Positions 11,150-64,000 of a stretch of 64,000 nt of DNA are shown in pieces. Positions within the stretch are counted from its first letter, which is position 1. Every line of letters starts with the position of its first letter. Location of the stretch: positions 124,001 to 188,000 of the IMG/VR virus record IMGVR_UViG_3300020473_000011. The stretch is one strand, 5' to 3'. Made by a program: the position numbers and the translations under genes. Below the pieces are notes generated by a model. It saw only the letters and a list, made by a program, of their open reading frames with translations. It ran no database searches and was not told the origin of the DNA.

Positions 11150-11740
11150 TTAGGCGTATTGAGCGGCTAGGACGTCGTATGAGTCGACGGTGTGGGCAAA
11201 CTCAGGGTCTAACTGGCAGTCTTCGTCAAATGGTTTGTTGTGCAGGCGAGCTGCAACGCGTCGAATACCTTTACTGGTTGGGAAGCCACCACACACCACG
11301 GGAGCTGTGAAGTACTTGCGGGCAATCGGTGCACCGTTCGGGTCAGCCATCACACTGTAGCGGTTGTAACGCTCGCTACGCTCTTCAAAGTAACACTCTA
11401 GGCGTTCGCCCAGCTCTTCGGTCATCATTTCAGCGTAGCCCTGTTTACGGTGCTCTGGTAGCACGTAGGCTGAGTAGAACGCATCACTGTAGTAGTGTAA
11501 GTCATCTTCATGGACGTGCCCGACGATTTGCTCCACCAGCATACACAAACCAATGATGCGGTTATCCAGTGTCAGGGTTACATAGTGTAAGTAACGTCGG
11601 TAGTCTTCTTTCGGGCGGTCGGCACGGCTGGCCATCACATAGTTCAGTGATTTTTCGTCAATGTATAGTTTGTTCTCTAAGATCAGGTGACCCAGTTCTT
11701 GGATGTCACCTTCTCCATACGCAAGTTGGAGTTCGGTCAT
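11150..11740 (-). CDS. GNAT-family acetyltransferase
   Basis: Motif A-like SAYVLPEHRKQGYAEMM. Confidence 0.75.
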   Translation of the reverse strand: MTELQLAYGEGDIQELGHLILENKLYIDEKSLNYVMASRADRPKEDYRRYLHYVTLTLDNRIIGLCMLVEQIVGHVHEDDLHYYSDAFYSAYVLPEHRKQGYAEMMTEELGERLECYFEERSERYNRYSVMADPNGAPIARKYFTAPVVCGGFPTSKGIRRVAARLHNKPFDEDCQLDPEFAHTVDSYDVLAAQYA

Positions 11741-12142
11741 CGTTTATGTCTCAAAGTATCGGTTCAATGCCCATCGGGCTAGTACACCGCCATAGTAGCT
11801 TGAGACCATCTTTTTCGCAATTAATTAAATCTTTTTCGAGGATTAATTGGTTAGAATAAAATCCCTGTATTTACGGTAGTTTTCCACCGAGTCCCTGATA
11901 CTATTATATAGAAAACCCTTTCATCACAGTGGGTTATAGCGTTTCAGCTGCTTGACTCTGCTTTTTGCTGTGGTACACCTAAAGTAAGCAAGGATAACGC
12001 GTACTTTACATAGGCGTTACTGTGCAATCGCTTAACGTAAAGACAGGCGGTACCAAGGCATGAACTAAAGTCGTTCCACCAGCTAGATTGCGCGGGTGGC
12101 TTTACCGAGGGATCCACTGTTGTGACAAAGGAGGGACTTACA

Positions 12143-12289
12143 GTGTTAGAGCTTTTAGTAACATTAGTAGTCGCGCTCGTACTGTGGTTTATACCCGCAC
12201 CGCACGTGAAGGATAACGAAACGTGTCGAGTGTGTGGAGGAATGCGACATGACGGCAGCGTCTGTGAAACAGACAACAATAAACAATAA
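12143..12289 (+). CDS. 48-aa membrane peptide with C-terminal CxxC-H-C motif (type I toxin-like)
   Basis: Manual translation (GTG start) MLELLVTLVVALVLWFIPAPHVKDNETCRVCGGMRHDGSVCETDNNKQ; AAGGAGG RBS; terminator at about 12311-12343. Confidence 0.7.
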   Translation: MLELLVTLVVALVLWFIPAPHVKDNETCRVCGGMRHDGSVCETDNNKQ

Positions 12290-12356
12290 ACAATAAGAAA
12301 CGGGAGTGGGAAGTGGTAGTTGCTTACGGGCTGCTACCCTTTTCGGCCTGCTTAAA

Positions 12357-12480
12357 TGAAAATGGGCTGACCCGTGGCCAACCCATTCAAATAAAGTACA
12401 GTCTGCGCTCACGGAGCAGACCTGTTGTTTAAGTATAAGTATAAGTAATCAGCTCATACTTATGCACCTAGATGCCCAAC
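12357..12480 (-). ncRNA. Putative sRNA 2
   Basis: Minus-strand promoter TTGCAA(12516-12511)-N18-TAGTAT(12492-12487); internal hairpin GTCTGC..GCAGAC; terminator AATGGGTTGGCC/GGTCAGCCCATTTT. Confidence 0.55.
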
Positions 12481-12538
12481 ACCCCTATACTAGTCTACAG
12501 AAATATCTTTTTGCAACTAATGACGAGTGACCTAAACG

Positions 12539-12625
12539 AAAAAGGCCAACCTTTCGGTCAGCCTCTTATCAATGCAGAGAAGGTTTCTCACGTCTTCTCT
12601 TGCCCCCGCTCGCGGAAGCAACACA
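12539..12625 (-). ncRNA. Putative antisense antitoxin sRNA 1
   Basis: Minus-strand promoter TTGCAA(12659-12654)-N17-TATGAT(12636-12631); its 5' end is complementary to 12904-12922; terminator AGGCTGACC-GAAA-GGTTGGCCTTTT. Confidence 0.75.
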
Positions 12626-13001
12626 AGCCCATCATAATCGCACTATCTTTATTTTGCAACATCATTCGGGACGCATACGGCTAAATTTTTTATAAATTAG
12701 TTGAACACTAACTAGGCAAAAAATCGAGAAAGCCGCAGACCCAAAGTGCCCAATGGTGCGTGTAAACCCCTGTCCTGCAACGAATTTAATCTGCAAAAAG
12801 CTTTCGTTGTACAATGGTTGTGGTATAATGGTTTTACTGTTTAGGCAGGAGGTGGCAGCCCTCTCAAGCTGTAGTTCGAGACTTTGAAAACGGGTAAGTA
12901 CCTGCTCGCGGAAGCAACACAATTTTTAGCGTTCCACCTGCTTTTAGAGTCGAACAAACGCTAACCGTGACAGTGAAAACCCATAGCAAAAGGATTCAAC
13001 T

Positions 13002-13190
13002 ATGTTTGATTCACTTGTTATGTTCCTAGCTGAGAATGGCTGGAATCTTTGGGGCGCTGTAGGCACTGTTATTGCAGTTGTCGATAAGCTGGTGGCTTTT
13101 TACTTCAAACGAGCTGATAACAAGCTGTGTAAGGAGTGCGAAAAGCCGAAGAAACATTGCCAATGCACACTAGGAGGTGATCAACACTAA
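13002..13190 (+). CDS. 62-aa membrane peptide with C-terminal CxxC-HCxC motif (putative type I toxin)
   Basis: Hydrophobic N-terminal half, CKEC...HCQC; extended -10 TGGTATAAT at 12821-12829 implies a ~170-nt leader; terminator at about 13205-13231. Confidence 0.75.
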   Translation: MFDSLVMFLAENGWNLWGAVGTVIAVVDKLVAFYFKRADNKLCKECEKPKKHCQCTLGGDQH

Positions 13191-13509
13191 CCGATAAACA
13201 CCACAGAGGGTAGTAGCCGCTGCCCTCTTTTTCTTAGTCATATCGACTTTTCGCGTTACCCAGTATAGCCCTTACCTTGTGACTTTTCCACACCGCAGTC
13301 CTGTTGCGTCGCCTGCAATGCACTTTTTGCAAACTTTCTGCACCATTGACCTTCCAATGTACAACAGTTCAGGTAGAATACCCGTGACTAATTTGAGACA
13401 AACCGCTGACACACAAGGTACTTAGACCTTGCTGTAGAGCTGTTTATGAGATATGAGACAAACCGACTATGAAACGATGCTACCCATGTAGCGTGTTAGG
13501 CGTTCCTGC

Positions 13510-13923
13510 GTGTGCAATGGTGATACGCTAATGGAAGATATACCAAGCCTAACTGAGTACTACCCACCGATGGACACGACCGAAGAACGTGTCGTTGATG
13601 CACTGCGCACGATACGCGAGCAGCTTAGCAATAACGAGTGGCGCTGTGAGCCTAGCAACGATGCCTGCTATACGCTGTATGTACGGGGCAACCTACGTGT
13701 GCGCCTAAACACAGTCTTAAAGACAATCACCTTTGAGAGCGTTAAAACCAACCGCCATCTTGTTTTGCGTATCGACGTGCAACACCGTAAGGATTTGTAC
13801 GACGCGTTTAGTCGCTACAGCCCGCCGCCCTATGTACCCGACCGCGATGGTGCTGACCTCGATGAATGGCTGACGTGCGTACATGAGAACCAGTACGGCC
13901 GTGCTGTCTACCAAGAATACTAA
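13510..13923 (+). CDS. Hypothetical protein
   Basis: 137-aa ORF, start uncertain. Confidence 0.6.
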   Translation: MCNGDTLMEDIPSLTEYYPPMDTTEERVVDALRTIREQLSNNEWRCEPSNDACYTLYVRGNLRVRLNTVLKTITFESVKTNRHLVLRIDVQHRKDLYDAFSRYSPPPYVPDRDGADLDEWLTCVHENQYGRAVYQEY

Positions 13924-15200: not shown

Positions 15201-15446
15201 TTGAGACGGGAAAGAGACATGACAAACAAGAGTAAAATAGCCCTAGGCATCCTATGCGTTGTCCTAGTTATCGGTGGTGTGAGCGCAGCAAGCCGTTATA
15301 TGTCGCGCTGGACATCAACGTTTAGTATTCAGCACAAGATTATTCAACCCAAGGCAGGCAAAGAGTGTGTTGTTGTCTCAACCACCAGCGCTGTTGCGAC
15401 AGACTGCTGGGATGTACCTGCGGCTAAGGTAGGAGGTCGTCACTGA
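15201..15446 (+). CDS. Small membrane-anchored protein
   Basis: N-terminal TM segment; C-x-VV...DCW. Confidence 0.6.
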   Translation: MRRERDMTNKSKIALGILCVVLVIGGVSAASRYMSRWTSTFSIQHKIIQPKAGKECVVVSTTSAVATDCWDVPAAKVGGRH

Positions 15447-16321
15447 TGGACACGAATGAGTTAGCAACCCGAATGAAGATGTACGAGCTGTCTACGCCTC
15501 ATCGGATCCCGAGCCTGATGCCGATTGTCGTCCGTTTGGATGGGCGTAGCTTTTCGACGTTTACGAAAGACATGAACCGTCCCTTTGATACACAGTTCCA
15601 TGAGGCGATGTGTGCTCTCACAGCCTTCTTAGTGGAGCGGACTAACGCAACCATTGGCTACACCCAGTCTGACGAAATCAGCCTTGTCTTTTTGAACACG
15701 AACTATAAGTCAGATCACCTCTTCGGTGGGCGTAAGCAGAAGATTGAGTCATTACTCGCTGGTATGGCCTCAGCCTTCTTCATGACACAAGTTCAGCAAT
15801 ACTGGCCAGATAAGCTGGTGGACTTCCCCCACTTTGATGCGCGTGCGGTTGCCTTCCCCAATGAAGTAGAAGCCTATAACTGTATTGTATGGCGCGAACA
15901 GGATGCAACTAAGAACAGCGTTCAGTTACTGGGTCAGTCCTACTATAAGCACAGCCGCTTGGTGTTGCTGTCTAACAAAGCGATTCAACACGCGCTCTTT
16001 ACTGAGCACAACGTTAATTGGAACGACCTAGAACCATGGCAAAAGCGCGGTACCTACTTTCAGCAACGTAAGGTAGACGGCGTTCGCTGTGCTGTGGCTC
16101 TCGATATGCCACCCATCACGCGTTGCAGTAATGCCATGGGTGTCTTGCTCCGAGGTGAGCAGCCTGCTGAGTTATTCATGAGCTGGCCAAAACCCCTTGA
16201 TACGAATGAGGCTCGTATGGAAGACGGTACGTTAGCTAGTCTTGAGAAGAGAAAGCAGCAAGTTCTTGCGTCTATGGGCGTGCCATCAGACATTATCGGT
16301 GCGAACGGAGGGTATAAGTAA
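15446..16321 (+). CDS. tRNA(His) guanylyltransferase Thg1-like protein
   Basis: VRLDGRSFSTFT, PFD, YTQSDEISL, FGGRKQK, FDAR, WREQDATKNS, KRG motifs. Confidence 0.95.
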   Translation: MDTNELATRMKMYELSTPHRIPSLMPIVVRLDGRSFSTFTKDMNRPFDTQFHEAMCALTAFLVERTNATIGYTQSDEISLVFLNTNYKSDHLFGGRKQKIESLLAGMASAFFMTQVQQYWPDKLVDFPHFDARAVAFPNEVEAYNCIVWREQDATKNSVQLLGQSYYKHSRLVLLSNKAIQHALFTEHNVNWNDLEPWQKRGTYFQQRKVDGVRCAVALDMPPITRCSNAMGVLLRGEQPAELFMSWPKPLDTNEARMEDGTLASLEKRKQQVLASMGVPSDIIGANGGYK

Positions 16322-34415: not shown

Positions 34416-35501
34416 CTAGGGGGCGAGAACTATAGCAAGGTTCTTCATCAATTTCCAGCTGATTAACGACGGAATCCCGCTGCAACGCTCGTATTGTGAC
34501 TTGATTGGCGTCTCATTATCAAAGCCCCATGTATCGGGTACCGTTTGCAGGCGCAGACTCTCGCGAACAGTGAAGCGACGGCTTGACCCATCAGACATAC
34601 GCATGATCTGTGCAGCGTTCTTACCCATCGGACTCGACATAATGGTGCGTGATGGACGGTCTTTGCTGATCACAGACAGGAACGTCGTGCGGCCACCCGA
34701 TGAATAGTAGGCTCCAAGCATGAAGTCTTTTTGGTCTTGTTCAGGTAGATTACGCCAGTTACCACCTTCGGGAACCTTATGTACAAACGGTTTCTCATCG
34801 TTACGCAGTGTCCATTTCTCGTGGTACTCATGGTTATTGTGACCGTCGGGCGTCTCAGGTAAACCTTTTAGTGCATCGGCCAGCGTGAATTGCACAGGGC
34901 TTTTCTCTGGGAACTGGAACTCACCCTCAAGGTCTTTACGTACCCCAACGATAAAGACGCGCTCTCGGCGCTGGGGCACACCATACTCGGAGCAATCAAT
35001 AACTTGCCACTTAACTTTGAACTCGGTAGACAGGCGCTCAATCATTTCCTCAAAGAAAGGCATATTCTTGCGGTCAACGAGACCACGCACGTTTTCTATT
35101 AGGAACCCTTTAGGCTTCTTGTATAGGTAGCAATCAACGAGTAGTTCAGCAAGGTTACCATTCTTTTCGCAAGCAGCGCCGTTACCCTCTCCTGATCGTG
35201 ACCATGGTTTACAGGGGAATCCGCCTGTGTAGACGTCAGCATCAGGGATGTCGTCAAAGTTAAGTGTCTTTGCATTGAGTACAACGGCAACGTTGGCAAT
35301 GTTCTTGTTAAAGTTACGTACGGCGTGTTTGTTATTATCAAAGGCGAAGATTGTTTCAAAGCCTGCGTACTCTGTCCCAATTGCCCCCACACCTGCACCG
35401 CAGTAGAAGTCCACAACTGTTAACCCGTTCTTTGGTAACTGGGTCATTTGCTCACCATTAGGGCAGCCGTGCAGCTGCGCCTCGTGCACATAATTGTTCA
35501 T
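34416..35501 (-). CDS. C5-cytosine DNA methyltransferase (orphan)
   Basis: Motif I DFYCGAG, IV GGFPC, VI ENV, VIII PQRRERVF, IX RRFTVRE..RLQ. Confidence 0.95.
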   Translation of the reverse strand: MNNYVHEAQLHGCPNGEQMTQLPKNGLTVVDFYCGAGVGAIGTEYAGFETIFAFDNNKHAVRNFNKNIANVAVVLNAKTLNFDDIPDADVYTGGFPCKPWSRSGEGNGAACEKNGNLAELLVDCYLYKKPKGFLIENVRGLVDRKNMPFFEEMIERLSTEFKVKWQVIDCSEYGVPQRRERVFIVGVRKDLEGEFQFPEKSPVQFTLADALKGLPETPDGHNNHEYHEKWTLRNDEKPFVHKVPEGGNWRNLPEQDQKDFMLGAYYSSGGRTTFLSVISKDRPSRTIMSSPMGKNAAQIMRMSDGSSRRFTVRESLRLQTVPDTWGFDNETPIKSQYERCSGIPSLISWKLMKNLAIVLAP

Positions 35502-56112: not shown

Positions 56113-59100
56113 TTAGTACGCCATCGCTCTTAGGTTAGCTACGACTGGACGGTGAAGCGCCGAGCCTGACAGTACAAGCATGATTCGAGTCTTGTCGTCA
56201 TTAAAGTCTGACGCTTTGTACTCGTACTCGTATAAGTCAGTGTCTAGCTGTGACTTCTCAGGGTTAATCATTTCAACCCATTGAGAACTACCGCTTGACT
56301 CGTCTTGGTAGTAAACCGAGACGGCTGCTTCGCCTTTCAGTTCTGCTTCAAACTTAACTGAAAGCGTACTTGGGTCGTCGCCTGCGCGGAAACTACGCGT
56401 ACAGTACACGGCTTTCCCTGCTTGCGATCCCAGCATCATTAGAAGCTCTGGCCACATCAGCGGCGTTAGATGCTTCGTACCTGTCAGCTTGGCTTTAACC
56501 GCGATAGAACCTGACACCTCTTCGTTAAGACGTAGTGGGGTGTTTTCGTTCATATCATAGTTACGACCATCCTCATCGGTGAACGTAATTGTGATGTTGC
56601 TGTCCTGTGACGGACGCATCGTACCACCTACTACCATGGCATCTGATAGCTTGTTCACGTTGAAGCTGCCTAGCGGGATCTCACGCTCAGTGTTCACGAA
56701 CTCAGCACGTAGTAAGCGGAACGTTAAGTCTGCTGACTGGTGCGGTGTCCACGTTGTCGCATTCGAAGACGAAAGCATTACACCGATTTGGTAAGCCTGC
56801 GCACTGATCACCTGACCGTCTTCTGATACACCACCTAGTTCAGCGATGGCCATTTCGTGGTCTGGGTCATCTGTAAGTACTACGAACGCATACTCAGTAC
56901 CTGCTTCAATGAATGTTGGGTCAAACGTAATACGCGTCCAACCGTGCTTAGCAGGGTTTGCGTATGACTCTGGCTTACCATCAATCACAGGGTCTTGAAT
57001 GTGGTGCGTATTCGTATCATAAAGCAGTAGGTCTTGCGGGTTAACGCGTACTTCTGCAATCGTCTTATCAGGAATACCTACTGATGTCGTACGTAATTGA
57101 ACAACGATTTGGTCGCTACCAATTGTCGTCATCTTAATGTCTACGCCTGACATGTAGTGGTCTTCTTTCAGCGTGAATGTCTGTGCTAGTGGATCCCAGC
57201 GCTGGAAGCCACCTGAGAACTTAGTTTGCCATTCTTCTGTCGTAACCGTACCTTTGCCTGTGAAGCTTGCTTGAGCCTCTGTGCCAAGCGTACCTTTCAC
57301 ATCAACTAGCTTACGGCCAGCTGTGAACGTGTTACCTTCAATTGAAATCTTACCTTTGATTACACCGTTGTTGTCAGCAACAACTGGGTTACCATCAACT
57401 TCAAGTACAGGCATTGTAACTTCGTCAAACGTTAAGCTTTGGATTTGCTCAGTCGGGCGGAAGCCTTCAATTGTGAACTCGATGTCCAGTGCACGAAGGA
57501 ACTCTAGTGCGCGCGTTGTCTCACCCACTTTAGCCGAACTTACGTTACCTTGGAATTTAAAGCCGTATACGCCGTGGTTCACAACTGTTGAGTTGATTGA
57601 GCCACCTGACTTCAAGTTCATCTTAGTTTCTGTCCAAACGTCAACCGCTGGCACCAGTGTCATTTTAGCTGGGATTGGCTTAAATGCCGCATAAGGGTTC
57701 ACCTTCATTGAGCCTGTCATTTCTGTTTGCTCAACTGGGTTACCAGCATCAATTAGTACCGTGTGCTCATATTCAAGCGTCCAAGGTTTTGTTTCCTTGG
57801 TTGGGTTCAAGCCGTTCGGGTTCATGTCGATAGGCAAGATAAGCTCTTCACGGGCAGGGTTGATTGTTGCACGAGCATCAATGTCACCATCTTGGCCAAT
57901 GATTAAGTTTTCCATACCTAAGTCACGCATGTCGTCGTCAAGCATTGGGTCTACGAATAAGCCATGCGTAGCACTTGGTGCATTACGAGAGGTGTCACTC
58001 TTTAAGCGCTCTAATGCGACTAAGTCATACAAGTCTGAGATACTGCGCTGCATCTTGTTCAGGTCTTGCATCTTAACAACTTTTACGCCGTCAAGTTTAA
58101 GCTCTGGGTCTTCCCACCACGTATGATAGATTTCAGCCAGTGATAATGCTTTGTTTGGTAGTGTTGGCGCTCTAGGTGGCGCAAAAGCACTCGCCATACC
58201 ACGCGCAAGCGTAAGCTGACCTTCTGGGTTTAAGTACAGACGGTCAATACGCGGCATACGCCAGCGGTAGTCAACAGAGATATATAGTTGGTCACCTGCA
58301 ATCTCGTCTACTTCTGCAAGCTCAACAGGTTGGCCATTCGGGCTATCAACAGGCACGATGTTAGCTGGAATGTCGAAACCTTTACGGTCACCCGTCGCTG
58401 TCACAAATGAGGTAATGTCCGTGTAGTAGATAAACTCCACGAAGAACGTACCACCCTTGCCAGGTCCCTCACTAAGCCAGTAAATAACAGACTCATTGGT
58501 GCCGCCGTTACCGTATTCCCAGTCAATACCTTTCTGGTATTCAGTGCCTGCGCCATTATGAACACGCGTGATAGCTTGAACCGACGTAACACCTACAGGG
58601 TTCTCATTGATGTCACCTAAGTCACCCACGTTACGACGTGATAGCTGGTGATTTGTCACCTTCGCAGGTGCAATAACTTCAATGATTTCCTCAACAGGTC
58701 CAAAATCAAGTGCCACCGTCATCGTGCTGTCAGCACGCGGTACAAAGCCCACAGGCTCAGCATTTGTCTGGTATGTTGTAGCTGCATTCATGTACTCACG
58801 ACGTAAGTCGTGCAGTAGGTCAATCTCACGGCCACCAACGTGTGCACGGCCTGATGAAATCGAGTAAGTCGTCGTGTCTTTGGTATCGTCCCACGTGAAG
58901 TTATCAAGACGTACATCTAAGCCGTTTACAGCATAGTTACCGTGTGCGTCTACATCATAGCGAACGATTGTACCGATAAGCTCTTGGGCTTCGTCAGACA
59001 GTAGTGCTTCTTCTTCAAGTACAGCACCTTCTGAGATCTTATACACCTCATAGAAAGTACCTTTCGCGTCAGGGTCATACGACGTGCCCCACTTAGCGAC

Positions 59101-59871
59101 TGCGTCAGGTGATGTTAGGTCTTGGTCACCACCAACCTCTGCACCTGAGTTATCTACCCATACACCGAAGCTGATCACACCCGATGCCGACCCCATTAGT
59201 TGTGGTGACTCAGGCACGTAGATAACAGCACCATTTACATACATGGCGGCAGCTTCTGCGCGGATAGTAATGTCACCACCGACAGGTGTTGACGTGTAAA
59301 GTGAACCGCCTGATAGTAACTGGCCGTTACGTAGTAACGCGTTACCTAGACCCTTAACCCATTGAGAAACTGCTTTAAGCAGCTTAGGGTGGGCATCAGC
59401 ATCCATATTATGCTCGTCGATGTCGACTGAGTCTTCGTACTGGAATACAAACAAGTCACTGATGTTAATGTTCGTTAGCGTCACGATTAGACGAAGCGAG
59501 ATCGAGCCATCGAAGTAGTACGTTAGTGCCTGTGACGGCTGACCTAGCGCAAGTAGGAACTCTTGCGGCACTTCTTCGCTAGACTCACCGAATAGGTAAA
59601 TCTCACCGATTTCTTTATCTTCATTTGTAGCGTTCGGCGGAATATTACAGATAAACTCAATTGAGTTATCTGATATTACCCGACGTGACGTGACAGGTGC
59701 TTCAAACCATAGGTTGCCCACTGAGTCAGTGTCACGGCTTGGTGATAGCGAACCTTTGTTTGTGGAAATCGCAAACTTAGTAGGGTAGATGTTCCAACCT
59801 TCTTTGTTCGCAGCATTGATGGTCTTACTCAGACCCTCATTTGTTATGACTCCAATTACGGCCATGCTCAT
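56113..59871 (-). CDS. Large baseplate/tail-associated protein, DUF4815-like
   Basis: GLFVDPMLDD, VNPYAAF, DPLAQTF, GVMLSSSNATTWTPHQSADLTFRL motifs. Confidence 0.85.
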   Translation of the reverse strand: MSMAVIGVITNEGLSKTINAANKEGWNIYPTKFAISTNKGSLSPSRDTDSVGNLWFEAPVTSRRVISDNSIEFICNIPPNATNEDKEIGEIYLFGESSEEVPQEFLLALGQPSQALTYYFDGSISLRLIVTLTNINISDLFVFQYEDSVDIDEHNMDADAHPKLLKAVSQWVKGLGNALLRNGQLLSGGSLYTSTPVGGDITIRAEAAAMYVNGAVIYVPESPQLMGSASGVISFGVWVDNSGAEVGGDQDLTSPDAVAKWGTSYDPDAKGTFYEVYKISEGAVLEEEALLSDEAQELIGTIVRYDVDAHGNYAVNGLDVRLDNFTWDDTKDTTTYSISSGRAHVGGREIDLLHDLRREYMNAATTYQTNAEPVGFVPRADSTMTVALDFGPVEEIIEVIAPAKVTNHQLSRRNVGDLGDINENPVGVTSVQAITRVHNGAGTEYQKGIDWEYGNGGTNESVIYWLSEGPGKGGTFFVEFIYYTDITSFVTATGDRKGFDIPANIVPVDSPNGQPVELAEVDEIAGDQLYISVDYRWRMPRIDRLYLNPEGQLTLARGMASAFAPPRAPTLPNKALSLAEIYHTWWEDPELKLDGVKVVKMQDLNKMQRSISDLYDLVALERLKSDTSRNAPSATHGLFVDPMLDDDMRDLGMENLIIGQDGDIDARATINPAREELILPIDMNPNGLNPTKETKPWTLEYEHTVLIDAGNPVEQTEMTGSMKVNPYAAFKPIPAKMTLVPAVDVWTETKMNLKSGGSINSTVVNHGVYGFKFQGNVSSAKVGETTRALEFLRALDIEFTIEGFRPTEQIQSLTFDEVTMPVLEVDGNPVVADNNGVIKGKISIEGNTFTAGRKLVDVKGTLGTEAQASFTGKGTVTTEEWQTKFSGGFQRWDPLAQTFTLKEDHYMSGVDIKMTTIGSDQIVVQLRTTSVGIPDKTIAEVRVNPQDLLLYDTNTHHIQDPVIDGKPESYANPAKHGWTRITFDPTFIEAGTEYAFVVLTDDPDHEMAIAELGGVSEDGQVISAQAYQIGVMLSSSNATTWTPHQSADLTFRLLRAEFVNTEREIPLGSFNVNKLSDAMVVGGTMRPSQDSNITITFTDEDGRNYDMNENTPLRLNEEVSGSIAVKAKLTGTKHLTPLMWPELLMMLGSQAGKAVYCTRSFRAGDDPSTLSVKFEAELKGEAAVSVYYQDESSGSSQWVEMINPEKSQLDTDLYEYEYKASDFNDDKTRIMLVLSGSALHRPVVANLRAMAY

Positions 59872-61205: not shown

Positions 61206-64000
61206 TTAACCAATGTTGCCTTTGTTTGAGTGCGAAAGCACTTCAAATGAACATGGCTGGCTTAGTGCTGCAAAGCCCCATGAACACGGCTTCTTAAATA
61301 CCTTTAGCGCTGCGTGGTCGTCTAGGCTAAAGCTGAATGTACTAGCTGGCTCGATAGCACGCTCGCCCATCTTCGATGCTGAAACCTTGAAGGTATTGCC
61401 TTTACGCTCGATTTGAATAGTTGACCCGTCAGGGAATGTTGACCACACACCTTTCTTGTCAATTGATTCATGTCGGTTTTGGTTCTCAAAAAGATTAACC
61501 TGACCCGACTGACCCGCGTTGATGATTAGACGCCATGCGCTCTTACCTTCACGCGTAGCACGAAGTGCCATTAACGTATGTGTTTTACCGCTCACCGTAA
61601 GGCTCGCTAGAACAACACCTACCCAGTCATCGTCGCCATTTGTACCGCGTACGCGTACTGTCGCGTCGTAGTTATCAAATGTGTCTGGTGACGTTAAGGT
61701 GACGTATGTGCCGCTGTTTGCACCGTAATTAACACGGCCACCTTTAAGGCTCCATGGTGTTAGCTCATTAGGGCGTGCGCCACTTGAACTGTATGAGCCA
61801 CGTTGCCAGTCAGTCACAGCTTTGCTTGCACCGTCATAAAGAGGACGCGTATCTAGTTCACTATTACTACCCGCAAGTAGCGTTGTATCAAGTGGTGGTA
61901 AACCAAATGAGTCTAGCGACGGTGTCACATCGGTAGAACCGAACTTAATGCCTGAAACCTTTTCGTTTGGCTTAAAGCCTGCGATTTCGAAGCTAACACG
62001 TAGCTCACGTAAGTGTGGAAGCTCTTCTGTGCGCTCTACCAAGTTCTGTTTAGTGTTAGAACCTGTAAGACGCGTCAGTGTCGACGCACTTGTATTAAAC
62101 ATACGGCTAAACGTCGAAGAACGAACCCTTTCAGTACGCGTACGTGTTTGTGTGATCGTACGACGTAAGTTCTGCGATACCGTCCAGTTATCCAGCGCAG
62201 GCGATAACTTAATCGCTGGCGGGATTGGGTCGAACGCTGAGTACGGGTTCACTTTCATCGACGATGACGAAAGATTCTGCGATAGAACTGTACGTAGCGT
62301 GTAAGGCAGCATTGCTAGACCGTTAGGTGCATCGTTTTTACTGATGTCTTTCGTGTCCATCGTATGCACGTCAGAAGAAAGCGTAAGCTCGCCTGCTGCT
62401 GAGTTAACCATCGCTGTTTGAATAGCGCCACCATCACGTTGACTGTCGTCGACAAACGCATCGACAAAGATACCACGCTTCGTACGTGGGTCGTCGCCTG
62501 CTGCCATGCGAGCAATACGCTCTTCGGCCATCATATCGAATAAGTTCGTGATGTTCTGCTTCATAGCCGTCAGCTCATCAGCACGGATAGCAACTACGCC
62601 TGTGTTCTGCACAGCTGGGTTAATGCCCGATGTCCAGTGATGGCCAAGCTCAGCAATCGCGAGTGTGCCCGCTGGTGCTTTCGGAGCCGATAATGCGCGA
62701 GTGTCGCCTTTACCACGAATACGGTTAATCGCACCATTACGCTCAAGGACAATAAGGTCTTTACGCGGTAGTAGTGTTTCGTACTCAATGTGGAAGTTAG
62801 ACCCAACAATGGCACCCTCAAAGGTAAAGCCTGACTCAAGTACATCACTTTCTGGGATTGTGCGCTCAACGATGTGCTCACAGTCAATTGTGAATAGTGA
62901 CCCCGTTGGCGGCTCGGCACCTAGTGGTGACCAATCAATTAGGCTTCCCTTAATTAGGAAGTCTCGACCTTCTAAAAATGATGATGTACCGTAGCGAATG
63001 CTGTGTACCGTCAGTAAGTTTTCAACGATAAAGTCGCTAGTGCCTGACACTTGGCCACGCTCTATACCCAGCGTCGAACGCTTCGTATACGTCACCTTCA
63101 CAGGTTCGTGCGTTGCAATTGGCATATTATCAACGACAACACCCATCTGGCCTTTTTCATCTGGTTGGAACTGGTGAAGCTCTGCAACTACGCGCTCAGT
63201 ATCAGGGTCAAAGTTGTAAGTGCGCTCAACGATACGTGGCTGGTCTATCTCAGTACCATCAATGTGTGCTTTACCTTCACCGATCTGAACCACATAGTGG
63301 CTATCACCAGTCTCTGTAATGCGCACATCCATACCGTGTACGACGTAGCTACCGTTTGCATCGCGGTCATAACGCGCAACGCTCGTATGCACAGGCTCTT
63401 CTTTGATTGTCCCATCAGTTAGGGTCATCAAGAAGCCATCTTGGATAATGTGAACTTCATGATAGGCGTCGCCTGCTGCTGAGTAGCGTGTACCCCATGA
63501 CAGCGTCTCTTCGCCTTTCTCATCAACACCTGTCCAGATACCTAACGATACCGTGCCACTTAGCGGAATCGCGAAGCTTGCGGCTGGTACGCGTTTAAGG
63601 ATGCCCTTATGGTAGAACTTAGCGTCGTCCACTTGTGCTGTGCCACTTTTGCGGTCGATATAAACGGCACCGCCGCTTGATACTTGATTTTCCACAAGAA
63701 TAGCGTCACCCAGTGACTTGATCTGATCCGACAACGCACCGAATAGCTCTTGGTGAGCATCGCTGTTTTGGTTGTGGTCTTCAATGCTACGATGGCCTGC
63801 ATACTTAATTTCAAATACTTGTGAAGCCTGTACGTTCGCGAGTGTTACGTGCATACGCAACGTGATCGTACCGTCTTTAAAGTAAGTGATAGTGTCGGTT
63901 GGCTGGCCTACTGCAAGTAGAAATTCAGACTGGTCTTCTGAGTTCTCACCAAATAGGTAGATTTCATTGATGCGCTCGTCCGTCTCAATTACCTGTGGCG
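61206..64000 (-). CDS. N-terminal part of the second DUF4815-like protein with an appended lectin-like domain (starts beyond the window)
   Basis: The frame stays open beyond 63860 (INEIYLFGE...EFLLAVGQP, matching 56113..59871); RYDRDANGSY, GIFVDAFVDD, VNPYSAF; C-terminal DDDWVGVV domain. Confidence 0.85.
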   Translation of the reverse strand, partial: PQVIETDERINEIYLFGENSEDQSEFLLAVGQPTDTITYFKDGTITLRMHVTLANVQASQVFEIKYAGHRSIEDHNQNSDAHQELFGALSDQIKSLGDAILVENQVSSGGAVYIDRKSGTAQVDDAKFYHKGILKRVPAASFAIPLSGTVSLGIWTGVDEKGEETLSWGTRYSAAGDAYHEVHIIQDGFLMTLTDGTIKEEPVHTSVARYDRDANGSYVVHGMDVRITETGDSHYVVQIGEGKAHIDGTEIDQPRIVERTYNFDPDTERVVAELHQFQPDEKGQMGVVVDNMPIATHEPVKVTYTKRSTLGIERGQVSGTSDFIVENLLTVHSIRYGTSSFLEGRDFLIKGSLIDWSPLGAEPPTGSLFTIDCEHIVERTIPESDVLESGFTFEGAIVGSNFHIEYETLLPRKDLIVLERNGAINRIRGKGDTRALSAPKAPAGTLAIAELGHHWTSGINPAVQNTGVVAIRADELTAMKQNITNLFDMMAEERIARMAAGDDPRTKRGIFVDAFVDDSQRDGGAIQTAMVNSAAGELTLSSDVHTMDTKDISKNDAPNGLAMLPYTLRTVLSQNLSSSSMKVNPYSAFDPIPPAIKLSPALDNWTVSQNLRRTITQTRTRTERVRSSTFSRMFNTSASTLTRLTGSNTKQNLVERTEELPHLRELRVSFEIAGFKPNEKVSGIKFGSTDVTPSLDSFGLPPLDTTLLAGSNSELDTRPLYDGASKAVTDWQRGSYSSSGARPNELTPWSLKGGRVNYGANSGTYVTLTSPDTFDNYDATVRVRGTNGDDDWVGVVLASLTVSGKTHTLMALRATREGKSAWRLIINAGQSGQVNLFENQNRHESIDKKGVWSTFPDGSTIQIERKGNTFKVSASKMGERAIEPASTFSFSLDDHAALKVFKKPCSWGFAALSQPCSFEVLSHSNKGNIG

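Follow-up and report, generated by a model that had tools for sequence, protein, structure and literature searches.

A peptide gene and a small-RNA unit that may be the uncoupled halves of a second cassette in a marine jumbo phage

Introduction

Do two small peptide genes and two small-RNA-like units that lie side by side in a phage genome make up two working pairs, or only one? The locus in question belongs to a 64,000-nucleotide (nt) stretch, bases 124001–188000 of the 281.5-kb IMG/VR virus record IMGVR_UViG_3300020473_000011 (rated 67% complete), the whole of which we call the window. Since the same phage is also present in public assemblies as a ~419-kb contig, ERZ842402 NODE_284656, it is a marine jumbo phage. 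The locus sits among small early-type genes and occupies a 1262-bp spacer between the gene of a GNAT-like acetyltransferase and that of a small peptide, P2. An initial annotation, made from the letters alone, described the layout P1> <sRNA2 <sRNA1 P2>, that is, two small Cys-tailed membrane peptides with two tandem minus-strand units resembling small RNAs (sRNAs), and took it for a two-peptide/two-sRNA cassette. The layout is as described, and every sequence feature listed there lies where it was placed; the question was whether P1 and sRNA2 belong together as sRNA1 and P2 do.

Chromosomes, plasmids and prophages are known to carry type I toxin–antitoxin-like modules. Our literature searches found no family of such modules described in jumbo or large virulent-type marine phages, Rfam had no match anywhere in the window, and comparison of the locus with the known type I families gave no relation by sequence, Rfam or Pfam. 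The cassette family described below is new.

Results

Homologues of the GNAT-like protein (58–64% identity) led us to contigs of related phages, in each of which just one cassette separates the GNAT-like gene from the gene that follows (131–135 amino acids, aa). In the standard form of the family an sRNA gene of ~90–110 nt, with a promoter that in the relatives reads TTGCAA, 17 nt, TAnnAT, lies beside the GNAT-like gene and on its strand, and a peptide gene with a long leader is divergent from it. Five relatives (L019, L020, L022, L025 and L026) encode a P2-like peptide of 62–64 aa, 53–56% identical to P2 and ending in CxxC-x5-CxC, while L023 has a P1-like peptide as the sole peptide at the locus. 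Because the peptide that accompanies the sRNA at this place is of P1 type in L023 and of P2 type in the other relatives, the comparison indicates that cassettes are exchanged at this one locus among related phages. Beyond these contigs the family proved hard to find: a distant blastn search of GenBank phages gave no DNA similar to the region, IMG/VR searches with the GNAT-like protein and with the P1 and P2 alignments returned no relatives, and a protein scan of GTDB genomes found nothing. Of the words sampled from the region itself, seawater metagenomes contained 36–89%.

Whole-molecule duplex folding gave meaningless long duplexes, and helix and 24-nt-window tests were used instead. When five cassettes (sRNA1/P2 of the window, L019, L023, L025 and L026) were set against one another, the 5′ end of every sRNA paired with its own leader over 17–24 Watson–Crick base pairs, beginning at sRNA nt 2–5 and with the target ending 73–79 nt before the start codon, whereas non-cognate combinations gave 6–9 bp. 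The paired sequence varies among the phages and always co-varies with its own leader, making four seed/leader codes in five cassettes; in L023, one of the five, the leader of the P1-type peptide has a 21-bp match to its own sRNA. The comparison argues strongly for an antisense interaction of the kind used by tisB/istR-1, zorO/orzO and dinQ/agrB. By analogy with those systems, pairing of the first 17–24 nt of the sRNA with the leader, ~75 nt upstream of the start codon, would probably block ribosome loading or trigger cleavage, and so set when or whether the peptide is made.

A second conserved element of the family sRNAs is the loop of their second hairpin, CGUGAGAAAC, whose core UGAGAAAC does not vary among the five members (L019 reads CCUGAGAAAC) and whose 7-bp stem shows compensatory changes in four of its seven pairs. 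Such conservation (positions 12576–12602, minus strand; alignment A5) suggests a contact with a protein or with an RNA loop, separate from the seed. The family terminator has the form GGCUNNCC-loop-GGUUGGCC, followed by a U-run.

In the window, sRNA1 and P2 conform to this scheme. A 22-nt repeat makes sRNA1 antisense to the P2 leader (21 of 22 nt), with a 20-bp helix that none of 200 shuffles produced, so that P2 has the antisense RNA that marks the type I class with trans-encoded sRNAs. The 17-mer of the sRNA1 seed occurred in IMG/VR on one unrelated contig. P2 is also expressed. In two metatranscriptome runs from one marine sample, the phage RNA forms discrete contigs that match genes of the region, and the deepest of them (12850–13203) spans the P2 leader and coding sequence to the terminator, showing that P2 mRNA is abundant.

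P1 and sRNA2 behave differently. The initial annotation had found no long match between sRNA2 and the leader of the first peptide, and both the duplex tests and the cognate matrix bear this out: sRNA2 formed 6–8 Watson–Crick bp with every leader tested, the P1 leader 6–7 bp with every sRNA, and the strongest local duplexes between sRNA2 and either P1 or P2 mRNA fell within those of shuffled sequences. The slot of the P1 leader in which an sRNA target would be expected (3′ end 73–79 nt before the start codon, ~12045–12066) matches no sRNA. A short-match BLAST found no segment of P1 mRNA repeated or complementary elsewhere in the 281-kb record; no RNA complementary to that of P1 was found, either locally or in that record. 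Resemblances in the same sense between the P1 leader and the 5′ end of sRNA2 or the 5′ untranslated region of the GNAT-like gene were discarded, having a shuffle z of about 0. The proposal of a second working pair is not supported on these grounds, and also because a related strain, L011, retains P1 without sRNA2, because P1 appears to be under relaxed constraint, and because the relatives have one cassette, of either P1 or P2 type. The features of the locus are collected in Table 1.

Table 1. Position, strand and basis of the features at the locus (window coordinates)
Feature	Position	Strand	Basis or remark
GNAT-like acetyltransferase gene	11150-11740	minus	weak Pfam hits
Third copy of sRNA-type promoter, TTGCGA, 17 nt, TACTAT	11792-11820	minus	z = 5.3 against sRNA2 promoter and start; 1/500 shuffles
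Candidate extended -10 TGATACTAT for P1 transcript	11896-11904	plus	unchanged in L011 though bases just 5′ differ
Slot equivalent to L023 peptide promoter	11952-11979	plus	alignment
P1 leader	11980-12142	plus	blocks homologous to L023 leader
P1 Shine–Dalgarno sequence AAGGAGG	12128-12134	plus	8 nt 5′ of GTG
P1, 48-aa single-helix membrane peptide (predicted), CxxC-x9-C tail	12143-12289	plus	GTG start
Hairpin (12315-12338) and CTTTTCGG after P1 stop codon	12315-12346	plus	fold -23.6 kcal/mol, z about -2.2 to -2.5
sRNA2, predicted structured RNA of ~125-130 nt, three hairpins and terminator	12354-12485	minus	fold, promoter, terminator
sRNA2 terminator hairpin	12388-12360	minus	T-rich tail on minus strand only
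179-bp unit present in window phage, absent in L011	12360-12538		direct repeats TAAAYGAAAAWGG at bounds
sRNA2 promoter TTGCAA (12516-12511), 18 nt, TAGTAT (12492-12487)	12487-12516	minus
sRNA1, working family member	12533-12627	minus	promoter 12659-12631
sRNA1 target in P2 leader	12901-12922	plus	22 bp including G-U pairs, ends 79 nt before P2 start
P2, 62-aa peptide, CxxC-x6-CxC	13002-13190	plus	mRNA in metatranscriptome contigs

If not half of a working pair, is P1 a gene at all? The elements ascribed to this previously unlisted open reading frame (ORF), namely the AAGGAGG ribosome-binding site, the hydrophobic helix and the motif CRVC-x4-H-x4-C, are all there. The helix comprises residues 4–18 (Kyte–Doolittle 2.78 over 15 residues), and P1 has the properties of a type I toxin as regards size and hydrophobicity, being a hydrophobic peptide of <60 aa. 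The length of the ORF alone is uninformative, for chance ORFs of 70–111 aa are also present in the spacer. The related phage L023, however, has an orthologue of 47 aa at the same locus, which aligns with P1 without gaps over 46 residues and shares with it VTLV, LW, PAP, three Cys, Asp37 and Ser39. The ungapped BLOSUM62 score of this pair is 90, against 19 ± 4 for shuffles (none of 5000 equalled it), and the BLASTP E value is 7e-4. In the window phage, L011 and L023 alike, the P1-type peptide has 47–49 aa, an N-terminal helix VTLV..LW.[IV]PAP, a CxxC-x9-C tail and a Shine–Dalgarno sequence (GGGAGAG in L011, AGGAG in L023), and its gene lies between the GNAT-like gene and the 131–137-aa gene. 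The orthologue marks P1 as a real and conserved peptide type, and the alignments place it as an alternative occupant of the P2 slot. It is also very rare: a profile search across 1.84 billion representative proteins turned up the L023 peptide as the only other P1-type member, and a JGI metagenome scan with P1 returned solely a copy identical to that of the window.

The C-C-H-C metal site that had been suggested does not hold as such: the three Cys are invariant, but His35 is replaced by Gln in the L023 orthologue; the invariant Asp37 is a candidate to stand in as a ligand. Against Pfam P1 gave no zinc-ribbon match, and against Pfam and PHROGs no family match at all; look-alikes from a protein atlas all scored <0.9 and were uninformative. 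When profiles of the P1 and P2 families were compared, the Cys tail alone aligned (67% probability), and common ancestry of the two is possible. A hairpin at the start codon was considered as further evidence and rejected, for it is marked in L023 (-12.1 kcal/mol, z = -3.1) and no better than shuffles in P1 and L011. We consider that P1 is probably still translatable, and that its product would act at the membrane.

The signals around P1 look weakened. The promoter of the L023 peptide reads TTGTAA, 16 nt, TACAAT, and its equivalent in the window TTGACT, 16 nt, TACACC, with the final T of the -10 lost. Downstream, the initial annotation had given P1 a terminator of its own. A hairpin does follow the stop codon, but as a terminator it is weak, because its U-run, besides being short, is drawn into the base-pairing of the stem; in L011 it carries four non-compensating changes, and the terminators of P2 and of the L023 peptide are clean (z = -4.1 and -4.4). 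P1 would have lost its complementary RNA, with its promoter and terminator apparently weakened as well.

L011 is an NCBI metagenome-assembled contig whose neighbouring genes differ from those of the window phage with a synonymous divergence (pS) of ~0.16. It lacks exactly 12360–12538, which is the entire sRNA2 unit, but retains P1, there a 49-aa ORF that begins with ATG. Between the two strains sRNA1 shows no substitution in 86 nt and the P2 promoter and leader one in 211; the P1 leader differs by 6.5%, its coding sequence by 5.4% and its 3′ end by 10%, about the same rate as the spacers. The P1 differences comprise five non-synonymous and two synonymous changes (non-synonymous divergence, pN, 0.046, pS 0.061, pN/pS 0.76), against a ratio of 0.10 for ten pooled neighbouring genes (pN 0.016, pS 0.157). 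Under the neighbours' ratio, five of seven changes being non-synonymous has a binomial P of about 0.013 by our own calculation, and the pattern fits neutrality. Taken on these seven changes, P1 is under relaxed constraint and drifts near-neutrally between the strains. Around its translation start (12115–12145), 10 of 31 nt differ from L011, including GTG/ATG and the Shine–Dalgarno sequence, the flanks differing by ~5%.

The absence of sRNA2 from L011 shows that sRNA2 is dispensable. The body of sRNA2 cannot be aligned to that of sRNA1 while the strains differ by 5–15%, so the unit would be much older than the strain split, and deletion between the flanking repeats is therefore the most likely reason why L011 lacks it.

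As to sRNA2 itself, the second minus-strand unit proposed initially, with TTGCAA, 18 nt, TAGTAT followed by a structured stretch and a hairpin, is present. Its promoter has the form shared by the family (TTGCAA, 17–18 nt, TAnnAT) and is homologous to that of the L023 sRNA, with the same -10 (local alignment z = 7.3, equalled by none of 500 shuffles). The minus strand folds with -43.3 kcal/mol (z = -3.95), the plus strand with -36.0. Other resemblances to the family are partial. The terminator is related, GGUUGGCC-ACG-GGUCAGCC, but its arms are swapped, and its score with R1, a model of the sRNA family next to the GNAT-like gene that we built in this analysis, is no better than that of opposite-strand hits. 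With R1, sRNA2 is the second-best match in the window (full length, minus strand, 18 bits, E = 0.012); since terminators on the opposite strand in relatives reach 18–21 bits, the support from this model is weak and comes mostly from the terminator. sRNA2 lacks the loop of the second family hairpin, having only CGUGAG in another hairpin, and its body differs from the family. Its likeness to the sRNA1 seed, another point of the initial annotation, can be seen (14 of 17 columns, two gaps; TGCTCCGTGAGC is the reverse complement of 12407–12418) and is marginal, a score reached by 71 of 2000 shuffles; moreover, this segment lies in an internal hairpin loop, and the family seeds are all at the 5′ end. 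We therefore take sRNA2 either for a partner left stranded by a P1-type cassette or for an agrA-like tandem copy of sRNA1 that has degenerated. From its family-type promoter, related terminator and stable fold, we think that it is probably still transcribed.

The terminator arms (12357–12372 and 12556–12571) are themselves of note: the 5′ arm of sRNA2 equals the 3′ arm of sRNA1, GGUUGGCC, and the 3′ arm of sRNA2 is the exact complement of the 5′ arm of sRNA1, GGCUGACC. The third sRNA-type promoter copy precedes the GNAT-like gene by ~45 nt; in the relatives a complete sRNA gene stands between this position and the peptide.

A weak P1 terminator facing sRNA2 raises another form of control, namely that the two constitute a working pair by convergence, in which RNA reading through from P1 would be the full complement of sRNA2 and, beyond it, of sRNA1. 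In Bacillus, toxin and RNA of bsrG/SR4 and of txpA/RatA overlap at their 3′ ends. The arrangement here would suit such control, given that P1 and sRNA2 point towards each other, their hairpins only ~10 nt apart, and that sRNA2 is well folded and has a promoter. However, no metatranscriptome contig covers 11404–12849 and no RNA run holds 11905–12530, so that no read-through RNA was seen; L011 keeps P1 without sRNA2; and family members with a clear partner are all divergent and direct a 5′ seed against the leader. We regard convergent control as highly improbable.

Could sRNA2 be a functional trans-acting RNA whose target lies elsewhere, be it in the third of the phage genome outside the searched record, in an mRNA of the host or, as cross-silencing, in the peptide leader of a related phage that competes with it? 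The intact promoter and terminator and the strong fold would agree with this, as would the high variability and specificity of the family seeds, by which an extra seed could address another cassette, and the variable presence of the unit among strains, often true of accessory functions. Searches for a target speak against it. A target search over the 281 kb of the record yielded none: the complement of the sRNA2 5′ end has no site there within 4 mismatches in 20 nt. A 19-mer match to the seed complement on two IMG/VR contigs reduced to one independent occurrence, both being the same phage; it has the orientation of the tail-protein mRNA encoded there, which rules out pairing, and we dismissed it as consistent with chance. 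In GTDB genomes, 16-mers of the seed complement matched at chance level only. A target outside the locus thus seems distinctly unlikely.

The opposite possibility is that both elements are dead, P1 an untranslated pseudogene and sRNA2 an untranscribed remnant of an old cassette. P1 does drift almost neutrally, with a degenerate -10 and terminator; neither element has an RNA contig; sRNA2 is deleted in L011; and P1 is uncalled as a gene at all nine contig places shown, out of 22 contigs with P2. On the other side, ORF, Shine–Dalgarno sequence and start codon are kept in both strains despite eight substitutions and a 4-nt deletion, and sRNA2 combines its fold (z = -3.95) with a promoter equal to the presumably active one of L023. 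We judge complete death of both unlikely.

Discussion

On balance, we lean towards reading the segment as the two uncoupled halves of a second cassette beside the working sRNA1/P2 pair. Most economically, recombination or duplication between a P1-type and a P2-type cassette would have placed two cassettes in tandem; later the components on the P1 side would have become uncoupled, the sRNA position near the GNAT-like gene being reduced to a bare promoter, sRNA2 being left without a target, and P1 remaining translatable and weakly constrained.

Several observations weigh against this interpretation. sRNA2 folds as strongly as sRNA1 (z = -3.95 versus -3.67) and its promoter looks intact, a combination unexpected in a decaying relic. 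P1 has an intact ORF, a strong Shine–Dalgarno sequence, a start codon (GTG, or ATG in L011) and all the residues shared with L023, and may be fully functional and merely fast-evolving; the estimate of its constraint rests on seven substitutions, and the databases hold one diverged strain and one P1-type relative only. Absence of RNA contigs is weak evidence, since such libraries lose small RNAs and the 5′ part of the GNAT-like gene likewise has no RNA contig, and the target search left out about a third of the ~419-kb phage genome as well as the host genome. Two further RNA runs, labelled as eukaryotic, held no phage reads.

A more far-reaching view would treat the family as 'addressed' cassettes, in which hypervariable seed/leader pairs serve as specificity codes that are swapped between jumbo phages at one locus. 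sRNA2 would then be a spare address against the leader of a competing strain or against a host mRNA, giving seed-specific interference during co-infection, and P1, released from RNA control, would be a fast-evolving effector. We put this forward as very unlikely.

Whichever history applies, the family resembles type I toxin–antitoxin modules and, judged by sequence, would be a variant not previously described. In tisB/istR-1 a divergent, trans-encoded sRNA is complementary over ~18–21 nt to a site well upstream of the ribosome-binding site, and the SPβ prophage carries the toxin/antisense RNA pair bsrG/SR4. zorO/orzO resembles the present family in the same respects, having a divergent trans-encoded sRNA, complementarity of ~18–21 nt far upstream of the ribosome-binding site and a long 5′ untranslated region (PMC3919570), but the tandem duplicated zor-orz pairs are near-identical and cognate, while the second pair here is non-cognate (PMC3919570). 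The peptides of the present family also differ from those of tisB and zorO by their Cys-rich tails, CxxC-x9-C or CxxC-x5/6-CxC.

The closest functional analogue of the <sRNA2 <sRNA1 P2> part is dinQ/agrA-agrB (PMC3567139), which shares with it a single-helix membrane peptide, a long (processed) leader, pairing by the 5′ end of the sRNA, and one well-matching sRNA (agrB; here sRNA1) next to a degenerate one (agrA; here sRNA2). The comparison with agrA/agrB made at the outset was therefore apt: agrA is a tandem duplicate of agrB that has degenerated in part and is apparently without function (PMC3567139), and both loci have tandem sRNAs divergent from a membrane-peptide gene. agrA, however, still matches in 25 of 31 nt (PMC3567139), unlike sRNA2 with ≤10 bp including G-U pairs, and the present locus differs in belonging to a phage, in having the extra peptide gene P1 and in showing no evident LexA control.

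Another toxin/antisense RNA pair on phage-derived DNA is ralR/ralA of rac, in which ralA is trans-encoded with 16 nt of complementarity and RalR, unlike the peptides here, is a DNase (PMC4041452). Both ralR/ralA and bsrG/SR4 reside in temperate or cryptic prophages, whereas the present locus is in a jumbo phage of ~420 kb, and no homology to them was found. Holins, finally, are small phage membrane proteins too. P2 has sub-threshold similarity to them (phrog_4237, PHROGs E = 6.7e-4; Pfam PF04971, E = 0.025 at 15 bits versus a cut-off of 26); P1 matched no holin family, and none of the genes close by was identified as a lysis gene.

With the same architecture at the same locus and four codes in five cassettes, the family forms a natural orthogonality table, and the genome of the window phage would show the aftermath of uncoupling, an orphan peptide and an orphan RNA. 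As such it bears on how pair specificity evolves, on whether orphan antisense RNAs gain new targets, and on Cys-tailed membrane peptides in jumbo-phage infection. For P1 and sRNA2 in particular the outcome is sobering, in that the second 'pair' is not a pair.

Other features of the region

Some observations concern P2 and the gene after it. Metatranscriptome contigs in both runs begin at 13386, which is 7 nt 3′ of a TAGAAT (13374–13379) that is preceded by TGTACAA; this is probably the transcription start of the next gene, which begins at 13510 or 13570. A promoter-like TGGAAA, 17 nt, TATACT on the minus strand (13262–13290) is directed into the P2 terminator and coding region; an RNA antisense in cis to the 3′ end of P2 could arise from it.

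The palindromic motif TCGTTGTACAA(T/C)GATT occurs genome-wide at well over 100 sites, mostly intergenic (for example 12803–12819, 20774, 21804, 22197 and 29309). At these sites TTGTAC is often followed at a distance of 17 nt by a TATAGT-like -10, and a GC hairpin, CTGCGGCGCAG, is often present about 25–35 nt upstream; at P2 and the next gene the -10 follows at a spacing of only 11 nt. The motif looks like a phage-wide promoter or operator module. Classical GGAG or AGGA is seen at only about one-fifth of the long ORFs, the motifs (T)TGAGAC(A) and ACTAACCGATA recur genome-wide just 5′ of start codons (for example 11747–11758 and 13389–13400), and one gene has CTGAGACA five times in tandem before its ATG.

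HipA proteins are a family of type II toxins, and a HipA-like kinase gene lies at 930–2249 on the minus strand (Pfam HipA_C, 4.9e-48; Couple_hipA, 4.5e-18). Elsewhere in the window are genes for a Thg1-like tRNA-His guanylyltransferase (15446–16321), a C-5 cytosine DNA methylase (34416–35501) and two very large DUF4815 proteins (56113–59871 and 61206–63860).

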